From Scyliorhinus canicula (lineage: Eukaryota): 64,000 bases of DNA. Location: contig NC_052162.1 of NCBI RefSeq assembly GCF_902713615.1, positions 130,472,653 to 130,536,652 on the forward strand. Reading direction: 5' to 3'. This document shows, one piece after another, positions 5,980 to 60,875 of this stretch (the stretch's first letter is position 1; each line of letters starts with the position of its first letter). The notes beneath the pieces are model-generated. The model did no database searches, had not been told where the DNA came from, and worked only from the letters and a program-made list of their open reading frames with translations. The translations under genes were made by a program, and so were the position numbers.

Positions 5980-7011
5980 TCAATTGACACAATTAGAAGC
6001 CACAGTCAGAGCATCTAAAAGGTGAACATCTAAATCAGTGTGACTGCCATGATGTCTCAGCAGCTTGGATGAACAAGTGAACCCCTTCCCACACACAGAG
6101 CAGGTGAACGGCCTCTCCCCATTGTGAATCCGCTGGTGTGTCAGCAGGTGGGATGACTGAGTGAATCCCTTCCCACACACGGAGCAGGGAAATGGCTTCT
6201 CCCCAGTGTGAATTCGCTGATGTCTCAGTAGGTCGGATGATGTTCTGAACCTCTTTGTACAGTGAGAGCAGCTGAACGGTCTCTCCTCGGTGTGAATGCG
6301 CTGGTGGACCATCAGGTAGGCAGAGGTTTTAAAGCAACTCCCACAGTCTGAGCATTTCACAAGTTTCTCATTGGTGTGGGTGCCTTGGTGTCCGAGCAGA
6401 CTGGATGACTGAGTGAATCCCTTCCCGCACACAGAGCAGGTGAACGGTCTCTCCCCAGTGTGAATGCGTTGGTGTCTCAGCAGGCTGGATAACTGAGTGA
6501 ATCCCCTCCCACACTCAGAGCAGGTGAATGGCCTCTCTCCAGTATGAACGTGTTGGTGTGTCAGCAGGAGGGATGAGTGAGTAAATCCCTTCCCACACTC
6601 GGAGCAGGTGACCAACCCCTCACCCGTGTGAAATCGCTGGTGATTCTGCAGTGCAGATGAGCGAGTGAATCCTTTTCCACACATGGGACAGGTGAATGGT
6701 CTCTCCCCATTGTGAACACGCTGGTGCATCAGCAGCGCAGATGAATCACTGAATCTCTTTCCACACTCCGAGCATGTGAACGCTCTCTCCCCGATGTGAA
6801 TTCGCTGGTGATTCCGCAGGGTGGATGAATCACTGAATCCCCTTGAACACTCAGAGCAAGTGAATGGCCTCTCCCCGGTGTGGCTGCGTCGATGGGTTTC
6901 CAGCTTTGAGGGACAACTGAATCCTTTCCCACACTCCCCACATTTCCACGGTTTCTCCCTGGTGCGAGTGTCTTTGTGCAGCTCCAGGTTCAGTTGAAGA
7001 ACTGTCCTCAT
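5980..7011 (-). CDS. Tandem C2H2 zinc-finger protein ZNF-A, 11 fingers, no KRAB/SCAN/BTB domain visible
   Basis: 11 CxxC...HxxxH fingers with TGERPF-type linkers. First in-frame ATG is 7011 (the track ORF starts at a GTG at 7092). Acceptor TTTCACAG|G with exon start 7342; candidate upstream donor GTGAGT at 8373. The C-terminal ~16 aa and stop come from an LTR. Confidence 0.85.
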   Translation of the reverse strand: MRTVLQLNLELHKDTRTREKPWKCGECGKGFSCPSKLETHRRSHTGERPFTCSECSRGFSDSSTLRNHQRIHIGERAFTCSECGKRFSDSSALLMHQRVHNGERPFTCPMCGKGFTRSSALQNHQRFHTGEGLVTCSECGKGFTHSSLLLTHQHVHTGERPFTCSECGRGFTQLSSLLRHQRIHTGERPFTCSVCGKGFTQSSSLLGHQGTHTNEKLVKCSDCGSCFKTSAYLMVHQRIHTEERPFSCSHCTKRFRTSSDLLRHQRIHTGEKPFPCSVCGKGFTQSSHLLTHQRIHNGERPFTCSVCGKGFTCSSKLLRHHGSHTDLDVHLLDALTVASNCVN

Positions 7012-7116
7012 AGAGAACACGTGTACAGTCTCTCCCCGCGGTGAACCTTTCAATCTTTTCCAGGCTGTGTAACTGGTTAAAGCTCCTTGCACAGTCAGTT
7101 CACTAGACCATTCTCA

Positions 7117-7119
<3 letters not shown>

Positions 7120-7155
<36 letters not shown>
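7120..7155. repeat. (TG)n microsatellite in the ZNF-A 5' leader
   Basis: Directly visible. Confidence 0.95.
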
Positions 7156-7158
<3 letters not shown>

Positions 7159-8439
7159 CGCTCGTCCAGGTGATTTTCCAGTACCACTGGTGTTTAAACA
7201 ATTTGAAGGGACAGACCAAACATTTCCTATTCTAGTTTCAAATGTCGATGATATTCGGGTCCCGAATAATCTAGTGACTCTGTCAGATCTTCACGTGATG
7301 TTCATTGAGATTTGAGTCTGTGAATCCTCCCCTTCTGATACCCTGTGAAAGCAGTTCATAAAAGTAATTGCTGTCAGCACTGGATAGAAATTCAGAATAG
7401 ATAATTCTAGTTTCCGTGGAACAGTCTTGCCCCGCTCATTCCCCAAAATGTATCAATCTTCATCCACACACTCTTCCCTCCATTCTCACTCTCCTGGACC
7501 TAAAATCCTCTACCAATTCTCGAGGAATTCATTCATGCTGATGAACAGATCCATGCTCACTGCTTCACATCCAGGACACAGATCTGAAAATCTTCTGCAG
7601 GCTGCTGGCCTATATATATATATATATATAGTGCACATAAATTTCTGTAATTTACAGAACGCTATTACTTGATTAGAGATACAGGCTGGATGACGGAGAA
7701 CGTTTTTTGGGGAAACGAGCGATCAAGATCTGGAACTCAGTGACTTACGAAGATGATCAAAGCGGAGACGCTCAATTTTAAAACAAAATTTGGATGGACA
7801 AATGAAGGAATGGGGGTATATTGGGGAAATGACACTGACTGGATTATCTGTTAAGAGTGTTGGCATGGATTCAAGTTGCTGAAGGATCTCCTTTTCTGCT
7901 TTGATGACTCTTTGACTGGAAATATATAATGTAGCTGCAATACTATGTTACAAGTTTGGAATAATAAATTAACTTTAATACATAACAATAAATAAGATAC
8001 TAAATATGCACCTTATATCAAATATGCACCATGTAACAACACCAGACATATTAAGGTTGTTACGATGCTCGTGGTGACCTCATACTAAACAAATTCCCAG
8101 AAAGCCCAATGGAACACACTGAAGGACAACGTTTCACATTTAAAAAACTTCTACTGTGACAATCAACTAAAGTCGACATAAATGAATCATTGCATTGAGA
8201 GAAACAGTATTTGAATAAACAGGATAAATTGGTCTTTAACTATCTCAGACAATAAAAACAGGTTCCACAAAATCACAGCATTTTGCCCCTCAGCAAATTT
8301 GTCTTTAGTTCCAATTCCAGAGTTCCACAACTCTCTGTATTTTCCAGGGGGAGAAAGAAAGTGTTTTACTCACAGATGTTGGACAGAGGAGGAAGTTTCA
8401 GTCTGTATGTGAAACTATAAACAGATGCTGTGCTGTTTA

Positions 8440-8860
8440 AAGTCAGACTGCGGGGCTGGGAGGAAAATGACGTGAAGACATTTTGCAAAGTCCCCTCCCC
8501 CACTCAGCTGGCAGCCCAGCGCGCAGGCGCAGAGAGCGCTGCTGAGCCGAGCTGTCCGGGGCAGGCGCAGTGCGACTGCCTCCAGCGGTCGCTCTCAATC
8601 TCTTTTTGGACCAACCAGCCGCGGTAGTGAGAGAGGTGGGGGGAGGGGGAGTTGAGCGGCTTCTCGTCAGGCCGGTTGCCTGGAAACCTTGTCTCCCCTC
8701 CAGGAGGTTTTGGGGGAGGGGGAAGAAAGGGTGGGGGCGGGGCTCCCGTTTTTGCGCGCGCTGCACCTGCGCACTGGAACCCGGAGACGTCACCACGGAG
8801 CAGTGATTCCTATTGGCCAATTCAGAGCAGAGATCCATTGTGACGTCATGTCTGAGGTTG
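8440..8860. promoter_or_regulatory. GC/CpG-rich bidirectional promoter 1
   Basis: NRF1-like GCGCAGGCGCA 8521-8531, GC box GGGGCGGGG, palindromic ATTGGCCAAT 8812-8821, CRE TGACGTCA 8841-8848. Lies between ZNF-A (-) and the ZNF exon remnant at 10101 (+). Confidence 0.75.
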
Positions 8861-9077
8861 GACAATGAAGGTTCTTTCATTGAGCAACATCTGGGAGGAG
8901 ATCAATAAAAAATAGCAACAGAAGGAGGCTCTTTGGCCCTGCTCTGCCATCCCCCCGCTGTTACCAGACTCCGAAACCATCCTCTTATGGACTGACCTGA
9001 TTAAAACTATGTTCCTGTTTGCTTCACCCTATGCCTGTGTCTATGTTTTTACATTGTATACCTTGTGTTGCCCTAGT

Positions 9078-9340
9078 GGCAGCACAGTGGGTAGCATTGT
9101 TGTTTCACTGCTTGGGTGCGGAGTCTGCACGTTGTCCCCGTGTCTGCGTGGGTTTCCTCCGGCTGCTCCAGTTTCCTCCCACAAATCCCGAAAGACGTGC
9201 TGTTAGATTAATTGGACGTTCTGAATTCTCCCTCCGTGTACCCAAATAGGCGCCGGAGTGTGGCGACTGGGGGTTTTTCACAGTAACTTCATTGCAGTGT
9301 TAATGTAAGCCTGCTTCTGACAAAAGTAAATATTATTATA
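9078..9340 (+). mobile_element. V-SINE with alternative tail (type c)
   Basis: V-domain followed by CCCGAAAGACGTGCTG...GGCGCCGGAGTGTGGCGACT...CACAGTAACTTCATTGCAG. Confidence 0.85.
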
Positions 9341-9852
9341 TTATGTTATACAGTAAATGTTAGATATTTGTGGTTCTCTAATGAAGCATATTTATTATTA
9401 TTTCTAGTTTTGTTAAACAGTGCTGTGTATGTGTACAGTTATTGAGTCATTCCAGCAACTGGAGTCCATGCTGACTCTTTGTAGAACGATCCAGTTCATC
9501 ACATTCCCCCTCCATATACCCATGCAAGTTTATTTCCTTCAAGTTCCCATACAATTACATTTTCCGCTTCCACCATCCTCATAGACAGAGAATTAATGAT
9601 CATATATGATATATACAGTGGCACCCTGACTAAGGAGTTTCAGGTCTCTGTGTCCGGAACGTGCAGCAGTGACTAGTGGTCTTTCAATCAACATGAGTTG
9701 CTCCTTAATGCAGTTCAATATTAGTTAAAGTGGAGTGATATGGAGACTGTGTGTGTCCGGGAGGTCTTTTGGTGAACAAGAAAGAAAAGTCTGATCCATA
9801 GAAACTAGAATTGTCTGTTCTGTATTTCTATCTTGTACTTTTAGAAAACTCT

Positions 9853-10082
9853 TTTTTTAAAAATAAATTTACAGTACCCAATTCATTTTTTCCAAATAAG
9901 GGGCAATTTAGCGTGGCCAATCCACCTACCCTGCACATCTTTGGGTTGTGGGGGCGAAACCCACGCAAACACGGGGAGAATGTGCAAACTCCACACGGAC
10001 AGTGACCCAGAGCCGGGATCGAACCTGGGACCTCGGCGCCGTGAGGCTACAGGGCTAACCCACTGAGCCACCATGCTGCCCT
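9853..10082 (-). mobile_element. V-SINE short form inserted in a polypyrimidine tract
   Basis: TSD TAGAAAACTCTTTTT at 9842 and 10083. Confidence 0.9.
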
Positions 10083-10100
10083 AGAAAACTCTTTTTGCAG

Positions 10101-10180
10101 GATTTTAGAAAGGGAGGATTTGCAGCCGGAATTGTCACACCAAAGGTCATGTTGACATCAGACAATCACGCGATTCATTA
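10101..10180 (+). pseudogene. Remnant start of a ZNF coding exon (partner of ZNF-A); finger array not found
   Basis: TTTTTGCAG|GATTTTAGAAAGGGAGGATTTGCAG matches the exon start of the other ZNF genes. The upstream intron motif TCCATAGAAACTAGAATTGTCTGTTCTG is shared with ZNF-A and ZNF-E. Confidence 0.7.
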
Positions 10181-10185
10181 TCATA

Positions 10186-10476
10186 TCATAGAATTTACAG
10201 TGCAGAAGGAGGCCATTCGGCCCATCTAGTCTGCACCGGCTCCTGAAAAGAGCACCCTACCCAAGGTCCACACCTCCACCCCATCCCCATAACCCAGTAA
10301 CCCCACCCAACACTAAGGGCAATTTTAGACACTAAGGGCAATTTATCATGGCCAATCCACCTAACCTGCACATCTTTGGACTGTGGGAGGAAACCGGAGC
10401 ACCCGGAGGAAACCCACGGACACACGGGGAGGATGTGCAAACTCCGCACAGACAGTGACCCAAGCCGGGAATCGAA
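10186..10476 (-). mobile_element. HE1 SINE, long form (5'-truncated)
   Basis: Reverse V-domain and tail. Confidence 0.88.
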
Positions 10477-10482
10477 ACAACC

Positions 10483-11700
10483 TGTGATGAATGTAGATTT
10501 TGTTTTCCATAGATTGCATTATATATACCTGTTACAGTAATGTTATTAACAAACTGGGTTAAGGTAGCCAGTCTGTGTGTCTGCTAGGGCTGCAATTAAG
10601 ATGTCATAAAAGTGAGATAATCATTCATTCCAACCATGTACTTGTTTACCTATTTCGGGTTAATGGAATATTGTGTATTTTGGATGGTTCCCTTCTGGGA
10701 GGCTGGGGCAGATAATTTGAGACATTATGTTTAGACTTAGATAAGCAGGTAATGGGATCTGAATGGGATAGAGATAAAGTAATTAATGGGAGAGGCCAGG
10801 TTTGTTGCATGCAGAGCAGCACGGTGGCCTAGTGGTTAGCACAACCGCCTCACGGCGCTGAGGTCCCAGGTTCGATCCCGGCTCTGGATCACTGTCTGTG
10901 TGGAGTTTGCACATTCTCCCCGTGTCTGCGTGGGTTTCGCCCCCGCAACCCAAAAATGTGCAGAGTATGTGGATTGGCCACGCTAAATTGCCCCTTAATT
11001 GGAAAAAATAATTGGGTAATCTAAATTAAAAAAAAAAAGATTTCTTGCATGCAGTTTTGGCTGTAGGAATTTTTGAGTTTGCCAAGGCAGAAGGATTTTC
11101 AGGTTGTGCCTGAAAAGGTCTCTTTCTCTTCTTCTGAAAGGAAATCGCTACCCAATAGTACAGAAAGTACCCCTGTGTTTGCCAACTATTTTTACAAGTG
11201 GCTTTTGACCTGTAATGAGATTTGCTTATTTGGAATTAGAAGTTAGCAGTTAAAGTGTTTCCCTGTTTTGTTTTGAACAATTTAACTGTTACTTGCATTT
11301 TTCTGTGATGTTGATGTGGTGAATACTGTGTTAATAATAAAGTTTGTAGGACGTCACAGCGGCGCAGTGGTTAGCACTGCTGCCTTACATGGCTGAGGAC
11401 CCGGGTTTGATCCCGGTCCCGGGTCACTGTCCGTGTGGAGTTTGCACGTTCTCCCTGTGCCTGCTTGGGTTTCACCTCCACAACCTAAAGATGTACAGGG
11501 TAGGTGGATTGGGCATTCTTAATTACCCTTTAATTGGAAAATTTTAAAAAATAATAATAATAAAGTTTGTTTTAATAGAAAAGATCTCGATTAGGCAGTG
11601 GAATTGCTCTTGGGGCAAAGTATCCTTTCCTCACAGTTTTATGTATTGAAACATTGTTGAGGTTTCTTGTCTGGTTTCCCTAACATAAATTTGGGTTATA
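10483..11700 (+). mobile_element. Solo LTR (family A) with two nested short SINEs (10815-11038, 11349-11560)
   Basis: TG start, AATAAAGTTTG, ...CCCTAACA end; clearly homologous to 37753-38510 and 58650-59060. Confidence 0.75.
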
Positions 11701-12500
11701 ATCGTGCGTCGGCTGAAAATTGAGGCAACGCTGGGCGCCCAACAGCATGTCCAGTGCCTCGACAGTGGTGTGAATGTGTTCCATGCCGAATGCCATCTTG
11801 GGTATGCAATTTGTACAGTAAAGGCTGTTTGCATATCATTCACGGCCCAATCCGGTATTCTCCGGGCTTCCCGCATACTTTGCCTCCGCCAGGTGGAATT
11901 ACCTACGGCGAGGTTCCCTTGTGATAGTGAAAATCGGGAACTGGCACCGTGATTACTGAGGAAGAGAAAGGAGGTACAAAAAGTGTTTAACATCGCTATA
12001 GTGTGCTGACAGTTGTGCCGATGGCTGGGTGGGGGCGGCACATCTGCCAGGGGGGCATCCAGGTGGTGGGCCATGGGTCGAGGTGGTAGGCCATGGACCA
12101 TCATTGTCACAGCCTGCAAGGCAGCCATGCTGTTGACTGCCCCACTGTGAACTGAGCACCACGGGTTGTATGGGTGCCTCCCCCCACACCCCCCACCCCC
12201 CAGTACTCTCTGGCCCCAGCCGACCCATCAACGTGCTTCAGGGCAACCAGTGCCATCTTCCTGGCTGGGGTGAGGATGCGGGGAGTGGAGTGCCGATATG
12301 CAGCTCCTGCTTGTCAGGCTCTCAGTGCCGATCGCGACCCACCGTATCAAACACCGGCATGCATTGGAATTCCAATAGTTCCATGTGGCACTGGTGCGAG
12401 CCCATAGAATGTCCTGAATCACTCCGGGCCCAGTGCTATTATCGTGTACGTAGAACACTCGCGATTCAGTCCCGGCATCAGCACGGAGAATCTTGCCCAT
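11700..12500. mobile_element. Degenerate GC-rich non-autonomous DNA transposon (Harbinger-type MITE family)
   Basis: Ends GGAGAATCTTGCCC, like the TIR of the 46256-47015 element; related pieces at ~13600-14030 and ~20500-21440. Confidence 0.5.
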
Positions 12501-12622
12501 TGTCTTCCCCAACCAATTTTTTGAATCAGTGTACCTTGTATTAACCAAATATATTAATTAAAGAATACTGTATCAATTAGCTAACAATCAGTAACAGATG
12601 ATTGCATAAGTTTACAGGAAGG

Positions 12623-12840
12623 AGGGCAGCAAGGTGACGCAGTGGTTAGCACTGCTGCCTCACGGCGCCGAGGACCCGGGTTCGATCCCGGCCCCGAGTC
12701 ACTGTCCGTGTGGAGTTTGCACATTCTCCAAATATCTGCATGGGTCTCACCCCCACAACCCAAAGATGTGCAGGGTAGGTAGATTGGCCACGTTAAATTG
12801 CTTCTTAATTAGAAAATGTTGGGTACTTTAAATTTTTTAA
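12623..12840 (+). mobile_element. V-SINE, short form
   Basis: Consensus match. Confidence 0.88.
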
Positions 12841-12844
12841 AGGT

Positions 12845-13590
12845 TTACAGGATATTATTGCTCTGGAGGGAGTGCAGAGGAGATTCACCAGGATCTTGCC
12901 TGGGATGGAACATTTAAGTTATGAAGAGAGGTTGGACGGATTTGGGTTGTTTTCATTGAAGCAGAGAAGACTGAGGGGGTGACCTCATAGAATTTACAGT
13001 GCCAAAGGAGGCCATTCAGCCCTTCGAGTCTGCACCGGCCCTTGGAAAGAGCACACTATCTAAGCCCATACCTTCACCCTGTCCCCGTAACCACTTAACC
13101 TTTTATGGACACTAAGGGCAATTTAGCATGGCCAATCCACCTAAACTGCACAGCTTTGGACTGTGGGAGGAAACCGGAGCACCCGGAGGAAACCCACACA
13201 AACACGGGGAGAACATGCAGACTCCGCACAGACAGTGACCCAAGCCGGGAATTGAACCTGGGATCCCGGAGCTGTGAAGCAACTGTGCTAACCACTGTGC
13301 GACCCTGCTGCCTTGATCGAGATGTGCAAGATTGAGGAGCATGGTCAAGGTTGATAGGGAGCCTTAGTTGAAGGGTCAGCCACAAGAGGACACAAGTTCA
13401 AGGTGAGGGGCAGGAGGTTTGGGGGTATGTGAGGAACAACCTTTTTACCCAGAGGGAGGTGACGGTCTGGAATGCACTGCCTGGGAGGGTGGTAGAGGTG
13501 GGTTGCCTCACATTCTTGAAAAATATCTGGATGTGCATTTAGCACAGCATAATATTCAAGGCTATGGGCCAATTGCTGGCAAATGGGGTT
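12845..13590 (+). mobile_element. CR1 LINE 3' fragment with nested HE1 SINE (12987-13312, -)
   Basis: CTGGAGGGAGTGCAGAGGAGATTCACCAGG (LEGVQRRFTR) and the RGHKFKV motif. Confidence 0.8.
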
Positions 13591-13714
13591 AGGTAGCTAG
13601 GAAACCCCATTTTACGGTGCCCCCCCCCCCCCCCCCCCCCCCCCGGCAGCAGGATCCTCTGTTCCGGCAGCTGGCCAGTGGGGTTTCCCATTGTGGCCAT
13701 CCCACGCCGTCAGG

Positions 13715-16700
13715 AAACCATAAGACCATAAGACATAGAAGCAGAATTAGGCCACTTGGCCCATCAAGTCTGCTCCGCCATTCAATCACGGCTGATATTT
13801 TTCTCACATCCCATTCTCCTGCCTTCTCCCCATAACCCCTGATCCTCTTATTAATCAAGAACCTATCTATCTCTGACACTCAGTGATTTGGCCTCCACAG
13901 CCTTGTGCAGCAAAGAGTTCCACAGATTCACTACCCTCTGGTTGAGGAAATTCCTCCTCATCTCTGACCCGGGGCATGGATGCGCTGCTGGTGAAGCGGA
14001 TGATCCCGCTGACAGAGAATCCCGCAGCAGACACGATGGGCCAGACACGCAGACAGGGGGAGAATGTGCAAACTCCACACAGACAGTAACCCAGAGCCAC
14101 TGCGCCACCGTGCCGCTCCTTTGATTCGCTTACCTAACAAAAATCTATCTACCTCTACCTTAAAACTATTCAGTGAGCCCCACCTCCACTGTGTCTGAGG
14201 CAGGGAGTTCCAGAGTTGTGCGACCCTCAGAGATAAAAATGTTCTATGTTCTAAAAGGGCGACTCATAATTTTAAAACAGTGTCCTCTATTTCTGGACTC
14301 GCCCTCAAGATGAAGCATCCTTTCCAGTTCCACTTTGTCAAGATCGTTCAGGATCTTATATGCTTCAAGCAGGTCACCCCTAAACTCTTCTAAACCCGGC
14401 AGCACGGTGGCACAGTGGTTTTATATATATATAGAATTTACAGTGCAGAAGGAGGCCATTCGGCCCATCGAGTCTGCACTGGCTCCCGGAAAGAGCATCC
14501 CACCCAAGGTTAACACCTCCAACCTATCCCCATAACCCAGCAACCCCACCCACACTAAGGGCAATTTTGGACACTAAGGGGAATTTTTTTTATCATGGCC
14601 AATCCACCTAACCTGCACATCTTTGGACTGTGGGAGGAAACCGGAGCACCCGGAGGAAACCCACGCACACACGGGAAGGATGTGCAGACTCCGCACAGAC
14701 AGTGACCCAAGCCGGAATCGAACCTGGGACCCTGGAGCTATGAAGCAATTGTGCTATCCACAATGCTACCGTGCTGCCTACAGCGCTGAGGACCCGGGTT
14801 TGAATCCCGGCCCTAGGTCACTGTCTGTGTGCAGTTTGCACATTCTCCCCGTGCCTGCGTGGGTTTCACCCCCACAACCCAAAGATGTGCAGGTTAGGTG
14901 GATTGCTCACGCTAAATTGCCCCTTAATTGGAAAAAAATAATTGGGTACTCTAAATTTAAAAAAATAAAAATAATAATAACTCTTCTAAACCCCAGTAGT
15001 TATAAACCCAGTCTGCCTAACCATTTTGCATCAGACAACCTGCTCCTACCAGGTATCAATCTAGTAAACCTCCTCTGAACTACATCCAACCCACTTACAG
15101 CGTTCCTTAAATAAGGAGGCCAAGTCTGTACACAATATTTGTGATATGGTCTCACTAGTACCCTGCAAAACTGAAGCATAATATTCTTTTTTTTAAATAA
15201 ATTTAGAGTACCCAATTATTTTTTTCCACTTCAGGGGCAATTTAACATGTTCAATCCACCTACTCTGCACAGCTTTGGGTTGTGGGGGCGAAACCCACGC
15301 AAACACGGGGAGAATGTGCAAACTCCACACAGTAAGTGACCCAGAGCCGGGATCGAACCTGGGACCTCAGTGCCATGAGGCAGGCAGTGCTAACCACTGC
15401 GCCACCTTGCTGCCCTTGAAGCATAATAGTCTTACTTTAATGTTCAATTCCTCTCATAATAAAGATGATGTGGAGATGCTGGCGTTGCACTGGGATGGTC
15501 ACATTAAGAGGTCTTCCAAAACTAGGTTAAAGTCCCAACAGGTTTATTTGGAATCACTAGCTTTCGGACCATAGCTCCTTCTCATAATAAAGGATAGCAT
15601 TCCATTAGTGTTCTTGGACTGCATGCTGTACCGTCATACTAACCGGTTGTGACTCGTGCACGGAAACACCTACACACCTCAGAATTTCAGAATTCTGCAG
15701 TTGTTCCCCGTTAAGTGATACTGTTTTTATTTTTTCTTCCTCCAAAGTGAGGAACTTCACATTTTCCCTCATTATACTCCATCTGCCAGATTTGGCCACT
15801 AACCCAACCTATTGATATCCACCTGCAAATTCCTTATGTCTTCTTCACAACATACTTTCCGACCAATCTTTGTGTTATTTGCAAATTTAGCTACCATGCA
15901 TTCGCTCCCTTCATCTAAGTCATTGATATAAATTGTTTTTTTAAATAAATTTAGTGTACCCAATTCATTTAGTTTCCAATTAAGGGGCAATTTAGCATGG
16001 CCAGTTCACCCACCCTGCACAGAGAACATAGAACAGTACAGCACAGAACAGGCCCTTCGGTCCTCGATGTTGTGCCGAGCCATGATCACCCTACTCAAAC
16101 CCACGTATCCACCCTATACCCGTAACCCAACAACCCCCCCCCCCTTAAATTTTTTTTTTAGGACACTACGGGCAATTTATCATGGCCAATCCACCTAACC
16201 CGCACATCTTTTGGACTGTGGGAGGAAACCGGAGCACCCGGAGGAAACCCACGCACACACGGGGAGGACGTGCAGACTCCGCACAGACAGTGACCCAGCC
16301 GGGAATCGAACCTGGGACCCTGGAGCTGTGAAGCATTTATGCTAACCACCATGCTACCGTGCTGCCCAATCTTTGGGTTGTGGGGGTGAGACCCACACAG
16401 ACACGGGGGGGAATGTGCAAACTCCACACAGACAGTGACCTGAGGCTGGGATCGAACTCGGGTCCTCGGTGCCATGAGGCAGCAGCGCTAACCACTGCGC
16501 CTCTGTGCCGCCAGTGATTGATATAAATTGTATAAATTTGAGGCCCCAGCACAGACCCCTGTGGGACTCCATTTGTCAATAACCTGCCAATAAATAAACC
16601 ATTTGTGCATACTCTTTGATTTCTGCCAGCCAGTCCATCTTCTATCCATGCTACTATGTTACTCCCTACACAATAAGTATTTGTTTTCCAATCCAGCTCC

Positions 16701-17830
16701 AGGATCCCAGGTTCGATTCCCGGCTGGGTCACCGTCTGTGAGGAGTCTGCACGTTCTCCCCATGTCTGCGTGAGTTTCCTCCGGGTGCTCCGGTTTCCTC
16801 CCACGGTCCAAAGATGTACAGGTTAGGTGGATTGGCCGTGCTAAATTGCCCTTAGTGTCCAAAAAAGGTTCAGTGTTGGTTTCTGGGTTACGGGGATAGG
16901 GTAGATAGGTGGGCTTGAGTAGGGTGCTCTTTGTAAGGGCCAGTGCAGACTAGATGGGCCGAATAGCCTCCTTCTGCACTGCAAATTCTATGATAATCTC
17001 TGATGTGGCAGCTTATCAAATGCTTTCTGGAATTCCAAGTACAGTACATCTACAGGCTCCCCTCTGTCCACGGCACATGGTACTCCTTCAAAGAACTCCA
17101 ATAAATTAAGTAAATATAGGAACATAGGAACAAGAATAGACAAGTCAGCCCTTTGAGCTTGCTCCACCATTCAATTAGATCATGGCTGATCTGTGACCTA
17201 ACTCCATATACTTGTCTTTGGCCCATATCCTTTAATGCCTTTGCGCAACAAGAAAAAACTATTTCAGATTTAAAATTAAGAATTGTTCTGTCATCAATTG
17301 CCATTTGCAGGAGAGAGTTCCAAATGTCTACGACCCTTTCTGTGTCAAAGTTCTTCCTGACATCTCTCCTGAAAGGTCTGGCACTAATTTTTAGACCATG
17401 CCCCCTAGTTCTAGAATCTCCAACCAGTGGAAACAGTTTATCTTTATCCAACCTGTCTTTTCCTGTTGAAGATTTTGATCAGATCACCCCTTAACCTTCT
17501 AAATTCGATAGAAAACAGGCCGACTCTGTATAATCCCTCTTCATAACTTAACCCCCGAAATCCAGGTATAATTCTTGTAATCTTACGTAGCACTCCCTCC
17601 GAGGCCAATATTTCCTTCCGAAGGTGTGGTGACCAGATCTGCTCACAGTGCTTCAAGTCTAACCAGGGTTTTGGAAAGCTGAGGCATAACCTCTGTGTCC
17701 TTGTACCCCAGTCCTCTACAAAAAGGCCAACACTCTATTAGCCTTCTTCATTACTTTCTGCACTTTTTTCGTGGCATTTTAAAGGTCTATGTACCTGAAA
17801 CCCCAGGTCTTTTTGGACATAGATTTGGGC
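13715..17830 (-). mobile_element. Stack of CR1 ORF2/3' fragments with nested SINEs (14397-14960 with 14432-14776 inside; 15186-15415; 15935-16510 with 16022-16367 inside; 16690-16992)
   Basis: Minus-strand translations show CR1 RT motifs: GVPQGSVLGP, IYINDLD...KFANNTK, DVLYLEFQKAFDKLPH, RPYHKYCVQTW. Confidence 0.8.
15464..15580. mobile_element. Penelope-type short insertion
   Basis: Same family as 58055-58206; flanked by duplicated TCTCATAATAAA. Confidence 0.6.
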
Positions 17831-17954
17831 ATATATTTAAGGTAAGGGGCAGTAGGTTTGGAGGGTATGTGAGGAAAACATTTTCGCCCAGAGTGTGGTG
17901 GGAGTTTGGAACTCACTGCCTTAAAGGGTGGTGTAGGCAGAGACCCTCATAACA

Positions 17955-20390
17955 ATTTTTTAAAAATGTATTTTAATCCAAACATATATAAAAGGTTACA
18001 AAACATAAACAATCCGGGGACAAACTCCCCAACACACAACTATACAGTTTGCACGAATTTTCCCCTTTTTCACCCCATTCCTCCCTCCCACCCTCTGTGC
18101 TGTTGTACGAAGTAAATAATGGCATGATGGGAAAACTGGTCAACTACTGGGTACCATGTAAGAAAAGCTGACTTCGCATGATCTAAAGCCTGAATAAGAT
18201 CAGAAAAGGTCAAGCTGATCCGAAATGCCTCCGCAAATTCTGATAAGACTAACTCGTCATAACCCAAAGCAGTCTAAATACGACAAGATAAGGTCAGAAC
18301 AAGTCTCCTCCGATTCATAAACATTCCATCAAAGGACAAAATAATGATCTGAGTGACGGGACAGAGTCCTGAAAAGTCAGCAAGATGACGCCTGTTTTAT
18401 GATATTGCTTATGTTTCTATTTCCGATCGAATTCCTGACTAAACTGTTGTCACACAATCTTGATAATGATAATGTATAAATATTGAGCTGATTCTCTGTG
18501 AAAGCGCGGACTTGAGTAGGAATCAGGAGTGACACACCCTGCTCTCCGACCTCAACTTTCAGCCATAAACTGCAGTCTGTTCGTAAATAAAGTCTTGTTA
18601 TGTTTTCTTAACGAGCGTGGTTGAATTTTTCTATCACAGTCCAGAAGCGGGAAAAATATTGACTTCTACACCTCAACCCCCCTGCGACGAACAGCTCCTC
18701 AAACACGGCCATGAACATCCCCCACCTTGCCTCGATAACCTCCGCTGAACCCCTTAATTCGTAATTAATCTTTTCCAACCGAAGGAAGTCATCAAAGTCA
18801 CCCAGCCTGGCCGCCACCCCCGGTGGCCTTGCCGACCGCCACTCCAGCAGAATTCTTCCCCGGGCAATCAGAAAGGCGAAGGCCACAACATCGGCCCGCC
18901 TCCTCTCCATCGGCTGCGGCTTCTCCGATATCCCAAATATCGGCACCAATGGGTCCGGCTCAAATCCACCCTCGCTGTCCTTGCCAGCGTCGCAAACACT
19001 CCTGCCCAGAATCTCTGCAACGTTTCACAGCCCCAGAACATATGAACATAATTCGCTGGTCCCCGCCCACACATTTCACACTCGTCTGCCACTCCCTGGA
19101 AGAACCTACTCATTCTTGACCGACTCATGTGTACCCTGTGTACCACCTTGAACTGTATCAGGCTCATCCTTGTGCACGAGGAGGTCGCATTCACCCTTCA
19201 TAGCACCTCACTCCATACGCCCCAGTTTATCTCCCCTCCAGCTCCCCCTCTCAATTCTCCTTAATCTTCATCACCTCCCTGCTGTCCCAGCCACCTGTAT
19301 ATGTCTCTCATCCTGCCCTCCCCTTCCACATCTGGAAGCAGCAGTCGCTCCAACAGGGTGTACCTCGATAACCTGGGGAACTCTTTCCAAACCTTACGTT
19401 CAAAGTCCCTTACCAGCAGGCACCTAAACTCACTTCCTCTCGGGAGCTCTACCCTCCCCTTCAGTTCCTCTATATTGGCAAACTCTTCTTCTCAGGTACA
19501 AATCCCTCACCTAAACCAGCCCCACTTCCTGGACATACCATCTATCTCCCACGGCTCCAAACCATGGTTTTCGCACAACAGAGTTACCCCTCTATCCTCA
19601 AGTGCCTCCTCAGCTGGTTCCAGATCTTCACCGTGGACTACACTACAAGGCTCTTCGAGTGTTTCCTTGGCGCCATTGGCAATGCCGCTGTCACCATTGC
19701 CCTCAGGCTGGACCCCCGACAGGATTCTTCCTCCATCCTCACCCATTCTATCCCTTCTCCTTCCCACCACTGCCTCGCCTTCTCCACGTTCGCGGCCCAG
19801 TAATAATGTAGCAGGTTCAGCAACGCCAACCCTCCTTTCTGCCTCTGTCTCTGCAACAGGGTCCTCTTGACCCTTGGCACCGTACAAAGTCTGAAATAAT
19901 CACAGCCAGTTTCCGAAAGAAGGCCTTCGGTTCAAAGATCGGGTGTGTCTGGAATACGAACAGGAACCTCGGCAGAATGGTCATCTTCACCACTTGAAGC
20001 CTCCCCGTCAGAGTCAAGTGCAGCGTGTCCCACCTCTTCAGATCCTCCCTAACCTCCTACACCAGTTTTGTTAAATTCCATTTGTGAAGCATTGCCCATT
20101 CCCTCGCTACCTGAATCCCCAGGTATCTAAACCTGTCTCTGGCCAGCTTAAATGGTATGCCCCCTAGATTGGCTCACCGACCAAACTCGTTCAACAGGAA
20201 CACTTCACTTTTCCCTACATTTAACGTATATCCCGAGAACGTCCCAAACCTCAACAACAGGCCCATTATCCTCACTATGCTCTCCGGCGGGTCCGAAACA
20301 TACAATAGTAGGTCGTCCACGTTTAGTGACACCCGATGCTCCCTTCATCCCCTTGTAATCCCTCACCACTCTGCCGACCCCCAAAGAGAG
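17955..20390 (-). mobile_element. 5'-truncated L1/Tx1-clade LINE (ORF2 RT to C-terminus, 3' end)
   Basis: HRVSLNVDDLLLY (YADD region), LTLTGRLQVVKMTILPRFLFVFQ, KGGLALLNL, Cys/His knuckle CEMC...HMFWGC; frameshifted. Confidence 0.88.
18096..18670 (+). mobile_element. Solo LTR inserted in the L1 3' end
   Basis: TGT...ACA termini, TATAAA, AATAAA, 4-bp TSD CCTC. Confidence 0.8.
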
Positions 20391-21082: not shown

Positions 21083-21116
<34 letters not shown>

Positions 21117-21589
21117 CGCAAGGTCAATGAGGTCCACCACGTCACGGCCACACTAAACCACAAGTGATCTAAGCCAACGTGAATCCCAACTGTGGGGACC
21201 GGAGAATCGCGTAAGGCTTGGAGCAAAGGTTGCTGGGCCCACTTAATAGATTAAGACCCATTTGCATTTATAACTAAGCTGCCGCTGCGTGTGGAATGGA
21301 CCTTGTTCCTGCCACCAGCTGGGGGTCGGAGCATCACGTTCAGGTTGGCGTCCAGTGCCGATCCTGATTTTGCCCCGCATCCGATTCTCCGTCCATCAGG
21401 GAAGGCGATCCAGGTGTCCCGAGACAGAGAATCCCGCCGAATGTCTCTATCTACTCCCTGGAAATCATAACACAAACCCACTAGGCCGCTCCTTGTAAAC
21501 ATAAGCATGGCTTGAAAGAATGATGATCCCACTTTTTACGACATCCTCATTGCACCTTTTGCAGCCACAAGTATGTCTGTCTTTTGAAC

Positions 21590-23650: not shown

Positions 23651-23665
23651 TATGGAGAAGGTAAG

Positions 23666-46255: not shown

Positions 46256-47015
46256 TGGCGGAATTCTCCCCCCCCCCCCCCCATGCCGGGTGGGAGAATC
46301 GCTGGGGCGCCGAACGAGTCCCGCCACGCCGCCTCGGCACCCGCACGCGATGCTCCCGCCCCCCCCAAACCGGCGTGGTGAGATTCACGGCTGGCCGCTC
46401 GGAGAATCGCCGCTTGCCGTTTGTAATGGGCGAGCGGCGATTCTCCGGCCCGGATGGGCCAAGCGGCCCGCCCAATACGACATGTTCCCGCCGGCGCCGT
46501 CCACACCTGGTCACATCCGGCGGGAACAGCGCGGGAATGCTGGGGGGGGGGGGGGGGCGGCCTGTGGGTGGGGGAGGGGGGATCCAGCACCGGGGGGGGG
46601 CCTCAAAAGGGGTCTGACCCGCAATCGGTGCCCACCGATCGGAGGGCCGGCCTATCTGAATGAGGAACTCCTTTCCTCCGCCGCTCCGCAAGATCCATCC
46701 GACATGTCTTGCGGGGCGGCCGCTGGGAGGACGGCAACCGTGCATGGGAGGGTTGGCGCCAGCCAACCTGTGCAAGCGCAGGTGACGTCATTTACGCGGC
46801 GCTGGCGTGTAATGTATGCGGCGCTGGCGTGTAATGTATGCGGCGCCGCTTTTATGCGGTGCCAAGGCCCGGCGCGCGTAAATGACGCGGCGCCGCTCCT
46901 AGCTCCCCAGGGGTGGGAGAATAGGGGGCGGGGAGCGGCCTCCGACGCCGGAGTGAAACACTCCGGTTTTCACTCCGGCGTCGGGACTTAGTCTCCCGAT
47001 GGGAGAATTTCGCCC
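46256..47015. mobile_element. CpG-rich MITE, PIF/Harbinger-like
   Basis: TIR GGCGGAATTCTCCC / GGGAGAATTTCGCC (1 mismatch), 3-bp TSD TAC, no transposase. Confidence 0.8.
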
Positions 47016-47573
47016 TACATGTCTCGCTCCCAATATTTTTCACTGTGGCCCTGCTTAAATCTGGCCCTTGGCTTCTCTGTCTGTCACTTTTCTTATTCTT
47101 CTTTCTGTCTTTTGTTTTTGTCCTTGTTTCCTCCTCCTCTGACTTCTTTCATAGGTTCCCACCCCCCTGCCATTTTAATTTAAACCCTCCCCAAACACTG
47201 CCACTGGGATATCAGTCCCAGTCCTGCCCAGGAGTAACCCGTCCAGTTTGTACTGGTCCCACCTCCCCTAGAACCGATCCCAATGCTTTAGGAATCTGAA
47301 TCCCTCCCCCCTCACACCATCTCCTCAGCCATGTATTCAGCCGATATATCCCGCTATTTCTACTCTGACTAGCGCATGACACTGGTAGTAATCCTGAGAT
47401 TACTACTTTGTGGTCCAACTACTCAACTTTGCTCCGAACTCCCTATATCCTGCTGTTAGGACCTCTTCCCTTAATTTGCCTTTGTTGTTGATAACAATAA
47501 TTACCACGACCACTGGCTGTTCAGCCCACACACCCCCCAACCCCCACCGTTCCAGAATGTCTTGTAACCGCTC

Positions 47574-48323
47574 TGATAAAATATTAAAGCATGCCGCTGT
47601 GCAGAGAGACCTGGGTGTGCTAGTGCATGAGTCACAGAAAGTTGGTTTACAGGTGCAACAGGTGATTAAGAAGGCAAATGGAGTTTTGTCCTTCATTGCT
47701 AGAGGGATGGAGTTTAAGACTAGGGAGGTTATGTTGCAATTGTATACGGTGTTAGTGAGGCCACACCTGGAGTATTGTGTTCAGTTTTGGTCTCCTTACC
47801 TGAGAAAGGACGTACTGGCACTGGAGGGTGTGCAGAGGAGATTCACTAGGTTAATCCCAGAGCTGAAAGGGTTGGATTATGAGGAGAGGTTGAGTAGACT
47901 GGGACTGTACTCGTTGGAATTTAGAAGGATGAGGGGGGATCTTATAGAAACATATAAAACTATGAAGGGAATAGATAGGATAGATGCGGGCAGGTTGTTT
48001 CCACTGGTGGGTGAAAGCAGAACTAGGGGACATAGCCTCAAAATAAGGGGAAGTAGATTTAGGACTGAGTTTAGGAGGAACTTCTTCACCCAAAGGGTTG
48101 TGAATCTATGGAATTCCTTGCCCAGTGAAGCAGTTGAGGCTCCTTCATTAAATGTTTTTAAGGTAAAGATAGATAGTTTTTTGAAGAATAAAGGGATTAA
48201 AGGTTATGGTGTTCGGGCCGGAAAGTGGAGCTGAGTCCATAAAAGATCAGCCATGATCTCATTGAATGGTGGAGCAGGCTCGAGGGGCCAGATGGCCTAC
48301 TCCTGCTCCTAGTTCTTATGTTC
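47574..48323 (+). mobile_element. Young 5'-truncated CR1 (ORF2 C-terminus open, 3'UTR)
   Basis: QRDLGVLVH...VRPHLEYCVQFWSP...TRGHSLKI...WNSLP is uninterrupted; tail CCTACTCCTGCTCCTAGTTCTTATGTTC. Confidence 0.92.
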
Positions 48324-54440: not shown

Positions 54441-55478
54441 TTACTTATGAACTTGTTGGTGTCTCAGCAGGTTGGATGACTGAGTAAACCCCTTCCCACA
54501 CTTGGAGCAGGTGAACGGCCTCTCCCCGGAATGAACACGTTGGTGTGTCAGCAGGTTGGACGACTGAGTGAATCTCTTCCCACAATCAGAGCAGGTGAAC
54601 AGCCTCTCCCCAGTGTGAACCCGCTGGTGTCTCAGCAGAGCGGATGACTGAGTGAATCTCTTCCCACACTTGCCGCAGGTGAACGGTCTCTCCCCAGTGT
54701 GGACTCGCTGGTGTCTCAGCAGGGTGTATGATTGAGTGAATGCCTCCCCACACTCGGAGCAGGTGAACGGCCTCTCTCCCATGTGAGTGCGCTGGTGCAC
54801 AGTGAGATGAGATGATCGCGCGAACCCAGTCCCGCAGTGAGAGCACCTGAACGGTCTCTCGCCAGTGTGAACCTGTTGATGGAACATTAGTTCCTGAGAG
54901 GTTTTATAACTCTTCCCACAGTCCAGACATTTAAAAGGTCTCTCGTCAGTGTGAGCTCGCTGGTGTGTCATCAGGTTGGATAAATTAATGAATCCCTTCC
55001 CACACTCGGAGCAGGTGAATGGTCTCTGCCGAGTGTGAACTCGCTGGTGTGTCAGCAAGGTCGATTGGTGAGTGAATCCCTTCCCACACTCAGAGCAGGT
55101 GAATGGCCTCTCCCCAGTGTGTATTCGCTGGTGTGTCAGCAGGGTGGATGACTGAGTGAATCCCATCCCACACACAGAGCAGATGAACGGCCTCTCCCCA
55201 CTGTGCGTTCGCTGGTGTGTCAGCAGGGTGGATGACTTAGTGAATCCCCTTCCACAGTCCGAGCAGGTGAATGGCCTCTCCCCGGTGTGAACTCGTTGAT
55301 GAGTTTCCAACACTGATGGATAATTGAATCCCTTCCCACAGTCCCCACATTTCCACGGCTTCTCTCCATCATGACTGCATTTATGTTTTGACAGGCCAGA
55401 CGATCGGTTGAATCCTCGTCCACACAAAGAACACTTATACGCTTTCTCCCCACTGCGAACGTTGCTTTTTCCTTCCAT
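54441..55478 (-). CDS. Tandem C2H2 zinc-finger protein ZNF-D, 12 intact fingers
   Basis: Open frame from AACATGG (55478) to HQQVHK*. Exon start 55587; donor candidate AAG|GTGAG at 57424; AATAAA at ~54360. Confidence 0.92.
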
Positions 55479-55834
55479 GTTCAAATTCCAATTATATTCA
55501 AGTTACGATGAATTGGGCGACTCTTTCAGATCCTGACGTGATGTTTCATTTCATCTTTCCAACTGCAAATATTCCCCTTCTAACACCCTGTGAATTTGAT
55601 CTAAGACAGATAAAAGGAAATGAGAGAGAACCCACAAAAACACAAAGGCAGGTTGTGAAATTGAGCTGAGTAAATCTGGTCATTTGTGAGGCCGGAACGA
55701 GGATAAAGTGACCATGAAAACTGCTGGATTGTCATAAAAACCCAACTGGTTCACTGATGTCCTTGAGGGAAGGGAATTTGTCACCCTGGCCGGTCCTACA
55801 CATCATCCAGTATTTATTTATTTTTTTCTTTTAT

Positions 55835-57179: not shown

Positions 57180-57750
57180 GCCCCTAAGAAAGATGGCGGC
57201 TCCGCATACACCCTGCTGCTAGTGCCCCCAATAGAGATGGCGGCGATTAACCCAGGTAAACTGGGAGGAAGCTGCACCGCTGCTGTGTGCAACGGGCGCG
57301 AGGGGGGGGTAAACCTGTGTGCCGGTGGATTCCTTCACAGGGGTTTATGGTTTATATAACATGCTTACAAGGCATTTTCAACTCCCCGCCTCACATATCG
57401 CCCCAGTCGCCCCGCCATCCTCACCTTTGTGGATTGTGGATCCGAGAAAAAAAATTCCTATTAAAAACCGTCACTAATCACACTGCGCATGCTTCACTCA
57501 GTCCCGCCCCCTCATTCACTCCGATTGGTCGGAGGACCTCCCAGTCGCTCCTCCAGCCCCGCCTCCTCTCCTGATATTGGCCTGGTACTGCCATCAATCA
57601 TTCTCCGGGCATTGTGAGGTGTCAGGTGAGAGGTCAGTGTCGGGGGGCGGGGTTTGCAAATCCCGAGTGGGGCCCCAGAGCCGAATGTGTAACAATGAAC
57701 ATTCTCCACTCTCACTATCCGTCACTTCCGGCTTCTCTCCACAACCTCAT
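57180..57750. promoter_or_regulatory. Bidirectional promoter 3 (ZNF-D / ZNF-E)
   Basis: YY1 AAGATGGCGGC at 57190 and AGATGGCGGC at 57235, NRF1 TGCGCATGC 57484, ATTGG 57524, GC boxes, ETS CACTTCCGG 57723. The core is homologous to promoter 2. Confidence 0.8.
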
Positions 57751-58054: not shown

Positions 58055-58206
58055 ATGATGAGGAGATGCCGGCGTTGGACTGGGGTGAGCACAGTAAGAA
58101 GTCTTACAACACCAGGTTAAAGTCCTTCGGAAGGAGCAGTGCTCCGAAAGCTAGTGTTTGAAACAAACATGTTGGACTTTAACCTGGTGTTGTAAGACTT
58201 CTTACT
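58055..58206. mobile_element. Penelope-type short insertion with internal inverted repeat
   Basis: Perfect 33-bp inverted repeat 58093-58125 / 58174-58206; 12-bp TSD ATGTTTATTTCC. Confidence 0.75.
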
Positions 58207-58649
58207 ATGTTTATTTCCTTCAAGTGCCCACCCAGTTTCAGCTGTTAGATTGCTCCGAGTCTTGGAACAATTTCCATATTTGTGCAGGTTAGGTGGATTG
58301 GCCATGATAAATTGCCCTTAGTGTCCAAAATTGCCCTTAGTTTATGGGTGGGGTTACTGGGTTATTGGGATAGGGTGGAGGTGTTGAACTTGGGTAGGGT
58401 GCTCTTTCCAAGAGCCGGTGCAGACTCGATGGGCCGAATGGCCTCCTGCACTGTAAGTTCTATGAAAGAACTTTCTGTTTTAGATCCCCTCAGGAAAGTT
58501 TTCAGCAGCCAGGATTAGGCCCACAGCCTTTATCAGAGAAATAAATCACTGCTTATGTCTTCTTCGACCATCCTCATAGGCAGCGAGTTCCAGGACATGA
58601 CAACATTCTGTCCAATTAAAGTGCCTCTTAACCCCCAAGCATCAAGTGA

Positions 58650-59060
58650 TGAATGCAGGATTTTGAAAATATAGATTGTATGATATATCTGTTGCAGTAA
58701 TGTTATTAAAAGCCTGACTTAACGTATATCAGTTGCATTTTTTAAAAATCCTGCTGTAACACACAGGCAGACTCTGTCTGCAAAAGGTGCAATTAGGATG
58801 TCATAAAAGTGAGATCATCATTCATTCCAACCATGTATGTGTTTACCGACATGAAGCCTAATGGAATTTTGTAATGATTGCTGGAGATTCCCTGGAGAGT
58901 AGATAATTTGAGACATTGTGTTTAGACTTAGGTAAGTAGGTCATGGGATCTACGTGGGATAAAGATGCTGTAATTAATGGGAGGAGTCAGATTTGTAACA
59001 GGCAGTTTAGTTTTAGTCTCCCAAAGACACCTAGACTTGCAGCTGGTACTTGAAATGGAT
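58650..59060 (+). mobile_element. Partial LTR (family A)
   Basis: GTCATAAAAGTGAGAT...CATTCATTCCAACCATGTA is shared with the 10483 copy. Confidence 0.7.
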
Positions 59061-59283
59061 TTTTTGTCCAAAATGTGAGGTGGGGTTACCAGGTTGCGGG
59101 GATAGGTTGGGGGCATGGGCCTAGGTAGGGTGCTCTTTCCAAGTGTCAGTGCAGACTCTATGGGCCAAATGGCCTCCTTCTGCAGCATAAGGATTCTGTG
59201 AATATTCCATAGAAACTAGGATTGTTTATTCTGAATTTCTGTCCTCTGTTGACAGTGTTGACTTTTGTATACTCCTTTTACAG

Positions 59284-60875
59284 GATATTAGAAGGGGAGG
59301 ATTTGCAGACAGAAATCTCGGAGCAAATGTCATGTCAGGATCAACAATCATTCGATGAATGGGAATGGAATGTATCATGTGAGAGTACCTTTAAGAAATG
59401 GGTGTTTATAAAATAGCTGTAGTGGATGTACCTTTAAGAAATGGGTGTTTATCAGTGATGTCAGAGTGTGTGTGGAGCTGGGCTGTCTGTCTGCTTTACT
59501 TTAATTTTAGGCTGTTTGCTACAGTGTGTGTTTTAGTTTTGTTTTGAGAGCTGGATAACTGCAGGCAAAGCAATGAGCTGTATAAGGATCTCTCTGCAAA
59601 CTAAAGTGGCTCCAGATGAATTTGGTGATTTCAAAGTGCTGACTGCTCTCAGTCGTGAATTTAAACCTGATCTCTGTGTTAAATAGGGTCTTTTGTCTTA
59701 TGGATGTTAACGAAATGAAAATGAAATGAAAATCGCTTATTGTCACGAGTAGGCTTCAAGTGAAGTTACTGTGAAAAGCCCCGAGTCGCCACATTCCGGC
59801 GCATGTTCGGGGAGGCTGGTACGGGAATTGAAACCGCGCCAATAAGGAAAGATTAAGGTTTACTTATAGAATATTGTATCTGTGGGGAGGATTGGTGTTA
59901 GCACAGGGCTAAATCGCTGGCTTTGAAAGCAGACCAAGGCAGGCCAGCAGCACGGTTCGATTCCTGTACCAGCCTCCCCAAACAGGCGCCGGAATGTGGC
60001 GACTAGGGGCTTTTCACAGTAACTTCGTTTGAAGCCTACTCGTGACAATAAGCGATTATCATTTTAATAGTTAAGATGTTTACTGTGGGTTTATAAAGTC
60101 TTACCTGCTTTCATAAACAAACATTGTTTTAATTTAAAAGTACTGTGGATCTCTGGTGCATCACACCTGTAAGGTAGGCCCGTGTGCTCCCCATAACCAC
60201 AATCTATTAAAAGTTGTGGGTCAGTTGAACTCCATGATACACTTTGGGGTTCTCTAAACCCTGGCCCATAACAAATGTCATCGGCCTTTGAATTGAGGAG
60301 GAATAGCTGTCTGTTCTGTCCGCTTCAAAATACTTTAAACATCAGACTGACTGTTAAAGCTCCGAGTACATCCAAATGAGAATGTTCTAGAGCACTCATT
60401 TTAATCAGTTACGCAGTTGAAAAAAGAACACACCGTTCACTGTGAGGAGGTACCGTTCACTGTGGTACCCATTCACGTGTAAGGTGTCTGGATGAGGCAT
60501 CAACTGTTCACTGAACACAGAGAGATACAAGGACACCTGCACTATGGAGAGACCTTGGATATGTGAACACCGTGAAGGGAAGCCTGTCCTCATTGGAGCT
60601 GCAAAGACTTTGAGCCAGTGAACGGTCTCTCCCAGGTGTGAATATATCAGTGTGTGGAAAGGGATTCACTCAGTCAATGGATCTGCTCACACATCTCGGA
60701 GAGGTTGAGAGTGTGGGAAGGCACACTTGCAAGTTCATACCCCGTGGGGAGGGGCCGCTCACCTTTTCTATGTGTGTGGGAAAGCATTCACTCAGTCATG
60801 CAGCTTAGACACCAGTGAGTTAACACTGGGGAGAGACTGTTTACCTGCACTGAATGTGGGAAGGGATTCACTTCT
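59284..60875 (+). pseudogene. ZNF-E pseudogene (partner of ZNF-D), split by a solo LTR
   Basis: Acceptor TTTTACAG|GATATTAGAAGGGGAGGATTTGCAG; degenerate fingers 60280-60875 (GGAAAGGGATTCACTCAGTC, ACTGGGGAGAGACTGTTTACCTGCACTGAATGTGGGAAGGGATTC) with stops and indels. Confidence 0.8.
59373..60273 (+). mobile_element. Solo LTR (family B) with two nested small SINEs (59713-59836 -, 59893-60062 +)
   Basis: 4-bp TSD AATG; ends CCCATAACA; homologous to 23666-24254. Confidence 0.85.

Follow-up and report, generated by a model that had tools for sequence, protein, structure and literature searches.

Across animals, lineage-specific expansions of zinc-finger genes are believed to keep pace with transposable elements. 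To our knowledge, the mechanism is known only where the genes carry an effector domain, KRAB in tetrapods and FiNZ in cyprinid fish. A stretch of 64,000 nucleotides from the catshark Scyliorhinus canicula (contig NC_052162.1, positions 130,472,653 to 130,536,652 of the forward strand), here called the window, carries a cluster of C2H2 zinc-finger (ZNF) genes and raises two questions: do these genes encode anything besides fingers, and what is the unit by which they multiply? An earlier note on this DNA had proposed a head-to-head gene pair around a GC-rich promoter, copied as a unit, encoding no known effector domain, and serving to recognize transposable elements. We consider it likely that the window is instead a slice of an old shark-and-ray cluster of two-exon, fingers-only C2H2 genes that has grown by segmental duplication of variable-size pieces and by inverted duplication.

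Six leaders form three head-to-head pairs

The window holds four C2H2 finger arrays, which belong to the genes A, B, C, and D (Table 1). A search of the 64-kb window with all copies of the family leader as queries finds six leaders and no more. Three lie on the minus strand (A, B, and D) and three on the plus strand (psi1, C, and psi3), and their strands along the window read - + - + - +, a pattern found in 1/64 of the random orientations of six units. The three head-to-head ZNF pairs proposed earlier are borne out by these alternating leaders, and the layout A/psi1 (pair 1), B/C (pair 2), and D/psi3 (pair 3) is real. Using B and D as tblastn queries, we found two further decayed finger remains on the plus strand, an isolated relic at 35382-35693 and a stretch at 60312-60890 within the finger remains of psi3 (60274-60890).

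The long exon encodes fingers behind a probably untranslated leader

The leader common to B, C, and D consists of a pyrimidine tract, a splice acceptor (ACAG/G), about 105 nt of further sequence, and then ATG GAA GG. The acceptor is conserved in all six units, about 105 nt ahead of the ATG position. In B, C, and D, the ATG sits within the finger exon, the proteins start with MEGKS/MEGRS/MEGKN, and in-frame stops (in the finger frame) lie between the acceptor and the ATG; therefore, no upstream exon can add protein to these three genes. Two basking-shark (Cetorhinus) gene models, P0168 and P0177, have exactly MEGKS as their first residues. Other shark models have longer N-termini that are translations of the leader, in different frames in its first half, preceded by unrelated upstream sequence. 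In the Mustelus model P0213, an exon-1 peptide (MAAVN...) meets the leader exactly at the conserved acceptor, which supports a two-exon structure.

We evaluated the coding potential of the leader by the excess of third-codon positions among the differences in 14 comparisons of leader copies, which fall into two old classes, a and b (see below). Class-b leaders show no third-position excess between copies. A and the sevengill shark Heptranchias perlo are 85% identical over the second half of the class-a leader (7230-7289, compared with 15470-15530 of Heptranchias locus L001), and 6 of their 8 differences fall at third codon positions of a frame reading DLTESLD.SGPEYHR; the P value of 0.02 is nominal, 1 among 14 tests, and not significant. 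The other 13 comparisons lack codon periodicity. Given the absence of a class-b signal and the single nominal one, we rejected the leader as coding sequence in general and read it as a 5' untranslated region.

Fingers 1 and 2 of B, C, D, and their shark relatives form a constant two-finger head before the variable array (e.g., 55311-55478). The contact residues of finger 1 are kept across species (R/Q-S-G-K/R), and finger 2 is near-constant, contains a tryptophan (W), and has a proline at helix position 1. The acceptor, the leader of about 105 nt, the MEGKS-type start, the constant finger 1, and the W-containing finger 2 are all present in B, C, and D, whereas A keeps only the leader and finger 2.

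Domain searches, which took exons and six-frame pieces separately, identify nothing in these genes besides fingers. On the four arrays, all Pfam matches are to fingers or to related families that bind zinc (zf-C2H2 and zf-H2C2_2, E from 1e-58 to 1e-140), and the 10 to 21 intact C2H2 motifs per gene form tandem arrays of the kind found in KRAB-ZNF genes. Local hidden Markov models (HMMs), one based on 49 tetrapod KRAB boxes and one on 14 SCAN-bearing N-termini, with one human protein hit (P0048) excluded, were run on all six-frame pieces of at least 20 amino acids. Neither a KRAB nor a SCAN domain was found in the six frames of the window (best E 3.7 and 0.8, respectively). Pfam matched nothing on 15 of 16 other long non-finger open reading frames (ORFs) and gave one weak RVT_1 (reverse-transcriptase) match on the remaining one. 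The finger ORFs start 12-15 residues before finger 1, which leaves no room for the N-terminal domain that defines FiNZ proteins. The leader stops, the MEGKS models, and the null KRAB, SCAN, and Pfam searches together uphold the earlier claim that no known effector domain is encoded, and they support the view that these genes encode fingers alone.

The family extends across sharks and rays. A whole-protein word search was swamped by generic ZNF proteins, and relatives were found by a search with residues 1-75, whose nearest matches all come from sharks. The same leader and lead fingers recur in relatives from many sharks and rays, including Cetorhinus, Stegostoma, Mustelus, Scyliorhinus torazame, and Heptranchias. 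A literature search found no fingers-only ZNF family described from sharks.

Pieces of variable size, rather than gene pairs, appear to have been copied

One relative's locus, H. perlo L001, served as the outside DNA reference. It contains one plus-strand gene with its intron end and leader at 15269-15533 and fingers up to 17341. A, psi1, and psi3 have intron ends that align mutually and with this gene, and we refer to these units as class a. Heptranchias 15269-16693 is collinear with window positions 7481-6036 (A) at 71% identity over 1,465 bp, while 15273-15395 aligns to 9742-9860 (psi1) and 15324-15502 aligns to 59200-59378 (psi3). The class-b units B, C, and D have another intron end in common and match Heptranchias only from the acceptor onward. 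The intron-end and leader classes therefore give the three pairs the compositions (a,a), (b,b), and (b,a).

Between B and D, collinearity extends through the finger exon, the intron blocks, about 280 bp to the left of a promoter module, and the module itself. To the right of the module, no homology was found between pairs 2 and 3. C is a class-b gene copied in mirror image together with about 430 bp of its intron. The segment copied between pairs 2 and 3 comprises the left gene, its intron, and the module, and not the whole pair. With a class mix that differs from pair to pair and a homology that ends at the right edge of the module, the claim that the pair is the unit of duplication does not hold. 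The birth-and-death evolution of the cluster, also proposed earlier, is supported.

The Heptranchias locus also bears on the pairing itself. Its module core (13356-13439) is placed about 2 kb ahead of the intron end and leader, and a non-coding block between module and leader (13948-14044) matches one in pair 3 (Table 1); psi3 has its module, block, leader, and fingers in this same order. The 13 kb to the left of the Heptranchias gene contain no divergent ZNF partner, and pairing is therefore not obligatory. This makes the module an old part of the family's upstream region, which probably predates the split between catshark and sevengill shark.

Two of the three promoter regions share a module

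An NRF1-like site (CTGCGCATGCTTCACTCA), a GC box, and the inverted CCAAT TCATTCACTCCGATTGGT together make up a block that is confined to the plus strand and to two places in the window, the modules of pairs 2 and 3. The GC-rich, promoter-like region of pair 1 has no detectable homology to them (local alignment versus shuffles, z at most 2.1). We had considered it as a diverged copy of the module and rejected this on the same shuffled controls. The observed/expected (o/e) CpG ratio is 0.65-0.73 in the three regions versus 0.46 in the whole window, a modest enrichment. The earlier note had listed NRF1, CCAAT, GC-box, YY1, ETS, and cAMP response element (CRE) motifs for a promoter cassette repeated in every pair. 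The named motifs do occur, and the block is homologous in pairs 2 and 3, but the list is a union over the three regions, no single region contains all of them, and the region of pair 1 is unrelated.

About 250-290 bp to the left of the pair 3 module lies a candidate first exon for the right-hand gene, in which ATGGCGGCGATTAACCCAG, followed by GT, reads MAAINPG (57237-57258). A Heterodontus model, P0187, starts with MAAINPG, and 50 residues further on it resembles a translation across the NRF1-like site; these matches are short and weak. A corresponding stretch is recognizable in pair 2, where the plus-strand YY1 sites have decayed. Read on the minus strand, the module presents CCAAT, the GC box, the NRF1-like site, and then a YY1-like GTGAGGATGGCGG. 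The genes face away from the block on both sides, which suggests that it probably serves both neighbors. Use of both sides would mean that the candidate first exons of pair 3 point toward each other and overlap. The frequent use of bidirectional promoters by tetrapod KRAB-ZNF clusters had been cited as established; our literature search found nothing to establish that such use is common.

The copies differ in their state of decay

D, with 12 intact fingers and an intact start, is the only fully intact copy in the window. B has 10 intact fingers and has lost cysteines in fingers 1 and 3. C has 21 intact in-frame fingers up to 33051, followed by six more that are out of frame and then by stops up to about 33800, and its tail is cut off by the frameshift. 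Within C, three 504-bp units of six fingers each (31315-32826) are 99.4-99.8% identical, with 1-3 differences between units, and represent either a very recent in-frame expansion or an assembly effect.

A has a TAG at the position of the family ATG and a degenerate first finger, and an insertion of about 100 bp that includes a (CA)n run parts its leader from its fingers. Its homology to the Heptranchias gene stops at 6036, while the Heptranchias array extends about 650 bp further, and A is probably a pseudogene. No fingers of psi1 were found by tblastn in 7000-24400. In psi3, repeats separate the leader from broken fingers that contain stops and frameshifts.

These observations alter the picture of a sound left member and a decayed right member in each pair. 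The left frames are formally open in all three pairs, but that of A comes with a TAG start, a 5' insertion, and a 3' truncation. The right member is not lost or pseudogenized throughout, as C keeps a 686-codon frame with 21 fingers. With only three pairs, A broken, and C largely open, the left/right asymmetry therefore carries no statistical weight (Fisher P = 1.0 with A scored as broken and 0.10 on the scoring of the earlier note).

Comparison of B and D gives a synonymous divergence (dS) of 0.59 and an overall ratio of nonsynonymous to synonymous divergence (dN/dS) of 0.34. The dN/dS is 0.28 in the finger framework versus 1.02 at the base-contact positions -1, 2, 3, and 6, and the amino acids are identical at 23 of 48 contact positions versus 209 of 296 elsewhere (Fisher P = 0.003). 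This pattern is the usual one for poly-ZNF paralogues and indicates past constraint. As for diversifying selection at these positions, the contact residues do evolve faster than the framework, but a dN/dS of 1.02 falls short of proof.

Table 1. Coordinates of the zinc-finger units, their leaders, and associated upstream elements in the window.
Feature	Position	Strand	Description
Gene A finger exon, class a	5980-7342	-	Open frame 5980-7092; 11 intact fingers
Leader of A	7211-7365	-	Pair 1
Pair 1 GC-rich promoter-like region	8440-8880		CRE, CCAAT palindrome, GC box, GCGCAGGCGC
psi1, class-a right-hand remnant	9742-10211	+	Intron end 9742-9860, short interspersed element (SINE)-like copy, leader
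Leader of psi1	10075-10211	+	Pair 1
Gene B finger exon, class b	24439-25583	-	ATG 25473; array 24439-25497; 344-codon open frame
Leader of B	25460-25605	-	Pair 2
Decayed pair 2 counterpart of the YY1/ATG first-exon-like stretch	29330-29470	+	By alignment to pair 3
Pair 2 promoter module	29549-29790	+	NRF1-like site, then three tandem 64-bp units (GC box and TCATTCACTCCGATTGGT), 95% between units
Leader of C	30868-31005	+	Pair 2
Gene C finger exon, class b	30881-33800	+	ATG 30991; array 30985-33051; 686-codon open frame
Finger relic	35382-35693	+	3-4 degenerate fingers, isolated, without leader
Gene D finger exon, class b	54441-55587	-	ATG 55478; array 54441-55484; 345 codons
Leader of D	55465-55604	-	Pair 3
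Candidate first exon of the right-hand gene, pair 3	57190-57258	+	Two YY1 consensus sites, then ATG reading MAAINPG, then GT
Pair 3 promoter module	57483-57575	+	Single copy, orientation as in pair 2
Non-coding block in common with the Heptranchias class-a gene	57625-57721	+	Equivalent to L001 13948-14044; between module and leader
psi3, dead class-a right-hand gene	59200-60890	+	Intron end and leader 59200-59400, repeat insertions, finger remains
Leader of psi3	59255-59400	+	Pair 3

Competing explanations

In the reading that we consider likely, the cluster would be large and old and its family would be one of sharks and rays. Each unit would have a short non-coding first exon near the promoter block and one long finger exon, the latter composed of an untranslated leader of about 105 nt, the ATG (MEGKS), two constant lead fingers, and a variable array whose finger number ranges from 9 to more than 20. 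Growth would proceed by segmental duplication of variable-size pieces and by inverted duplication, not by copying one fixed gene pair, and decay would proceed by point mutation, repeat insertion, and truncation. In these terms, D would be intact, B would be open with two fingers short of cysteines, C would be open with 21 fingers, and A, psi1, and psi3 would be dead. The proteins are predicted to be sequence-specific DNA binders whose framework is under purifying selection and whose base-contact residues may drift or diversify.

Several points weigh against this reading. The first exons, the start sites, and the two-way use of the promoter are all predicted, and a dN/dS of 1.0 at the contact residues does not prove positive selection. 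Some shark models extend through the leader from an upstream ATG, and some family members may have a short N-terminal peptide. The Heptranchias gene, which has no partner, indicates that pairing is not universal. In addition, an exact look-up of the four ORFs in the protein collection found none of them.

A fixed two-gene head-to-head cassette as the unit of amplification, with a right member that decays systematically and proteins that recognize transposable elements without KRAB, strikes us as improbable. The three head-to-head pairs, the homologous, like-oriented modules of pairs 2 and 3, and the fast-evolving contact residues all speak for it, but it is difficult to reconcile with a class composition that differs in every pair, a pair 2/3 homology that ends at the right edge of the module, a pair 1 region that is not homologous, and a decay asymmetry that lacks statistical weight with A broken and C largely open. 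It would also surprise us if the family had a hidden N-terminal part, translated from the ATG of the YY1-site first exon (MAA...) through the leader and providing some members with an acidic effector peptide of about 75 residues. The in-frame leader stops rule against it in B, C, and D, and the models that do read through the leader (P0213, P0134, P0128, and P0208) differ in frame in its first half, have unrelated sequences upstream of it, and have no non-finger Pfam family on record. Apart from these models, it can draw on the MAAINPG reading followed by GT at 57237-57258 and on the A/Heptranchias comparison of the leader's second half, where 6 of 8 differences are at third positions; that P of 0.02 is one in 14 and not significant, and the 13 other comparisons show no codon periodicity.

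We likewise give little credence to a fossil cluster, in which no functional copy would be left in the window and D would be merely the youngest pseudogene. Half of the units are plainly dead, the ligands of two B fingers are lost, no ORF was matched as an annotated protein, and none of the listed sequencing runs that contain the stretch is recorded as RNA. Against these stand the 12 intact fingers and intact start of D, a framework dN/dS of 0.28 at a dS of 0.59, which shows that the B lineage, the D lineage, or both were long under purifying selection, and the in-frame 3 x 504 bp expansion, which left the frame of C open. As for function, that the proteins of the fingers-only cluster repress transposable elements is possible, though we lean toward doubting it. 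A far-reaching version holds that sharks and rays have a KRAB-independent, fast-evolving, fingers-only ZNF system against repeats, in which the two constant lead fingers would recruit a silencing partner in the effector's place and the old promoter block with its YY1 sites would tie the expression of the family to one program; this version is speculative, and we would not expect it to be correct.

Relation to known zinc-finger systems

The shark genes resemble tetrapod KRAB zinc-finger protein (KZFP) clusters in their tandem C2H2 arrays with TGEKP-type linkers on one large 3' exon, in their clustering, birth and death, gain of finger blocks in frame, and repeat-rich setting, and in contact residues that change faster than the framework. 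Unlike KZFP genes, they have no KRAB exon in any frame, their coding sequence starts 12-15 residues before finger 1, and an N-terminal domain is replaced by two constant lead fingers; recruitment of TRIM28 has no basis here. They also resemble the fingers-only poly-ZNF genes of other vertebrates (OZF-like, ZFP2-like, and XlCOF/XlCGF-like), which are the nearest database names of the shark relatives and consist of fingers alone. However, these names rest on finger similarity only, and the shark family has its own leader, MEGKS start, W-containing finger 2, and promoter block. The motif content and divergent genes recall mammalian bidirectional CpG promoters (NRF1, NF-Y/CCAAT, Sp1, YY1, and ETS/GABP), in contrast to which the CpG enrichment here is modest and pair 3 seems to have candidate first exons that point toward each other and overlap.

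The FiNZ genes of cyprinid fish are defined by an N-terminal FiNZ domain, and the zebrafish members repress long terminal repeat (LTR) elements at zygotic genome activation (PMC10547256). The main text of the metazoan study of ZNF genes and transposable elements that defined FiNZ does not mention sharks and rays (PMC10547256). FiNZ genes and the shark-and-ray family are alike as lineage-specific poly-ZNF expansions outside tetrapods, but the latter has no room for an N-terminal FiNZ domain.

A fingers-only family of very large size in sharks and rays, whose promoter block and lead fingers have long been kept across sharks, would be a useful third case, which could show whether target recognition works without a classical effector. 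The window itself is an ordinary slice of a lineage-specific, fast-duplicating, fingers-only ZNF cluster. What it adds is a clear negative result: copying does not go by the head-to-head pair, and no rule of left/right decay can be demonstrated.

Other features of the window

Two short interspersed repeat families occupy the introns and spacers of the cluster. One is about 230 bp long (e.g., 4128-4348, 9850-10082, 10813-11040, and 37356-37584) and the other is 300-350 bp long (e.g., 3440-3762, 10186-10476, 14431-14778, and 28500-28844); each has at least 10 copies, at 75-96% identity. An Rfam scan of 1-26100 and 26151-64000 matched no family, these repeats included.

The only strong CpG island of the window lies at 46161-47100 (GC 0.63, o/e 0.97, 92 CpG), far from any ZNF gene; the ORFs across it match no Pfam family and resemble GC-rich noise. 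A 278-codon ORF at 47398-48231 on the plus strand (..LEYCVQFWSP..RRFTR..ERL..LGLYSLE.RR.RGDLIE.YK..) has no Pfam match; we take it to resemble the C-terminal part of ORF2 of a CR1-type long interspersed element (LINE). A 26-bp tandem repeat (CCAGCTGTGGGAGCAGGAGCTGTGAA) fills 283-2352 with about 80 copies at about 90% identity and has a strong G-over-C skew and long spurious ORFs on the minus strand. A run of about 55 C residues is located at 43850-43910, and the segments 44726-45369 and 63361-63999 form an inverted pair with 75% identity.

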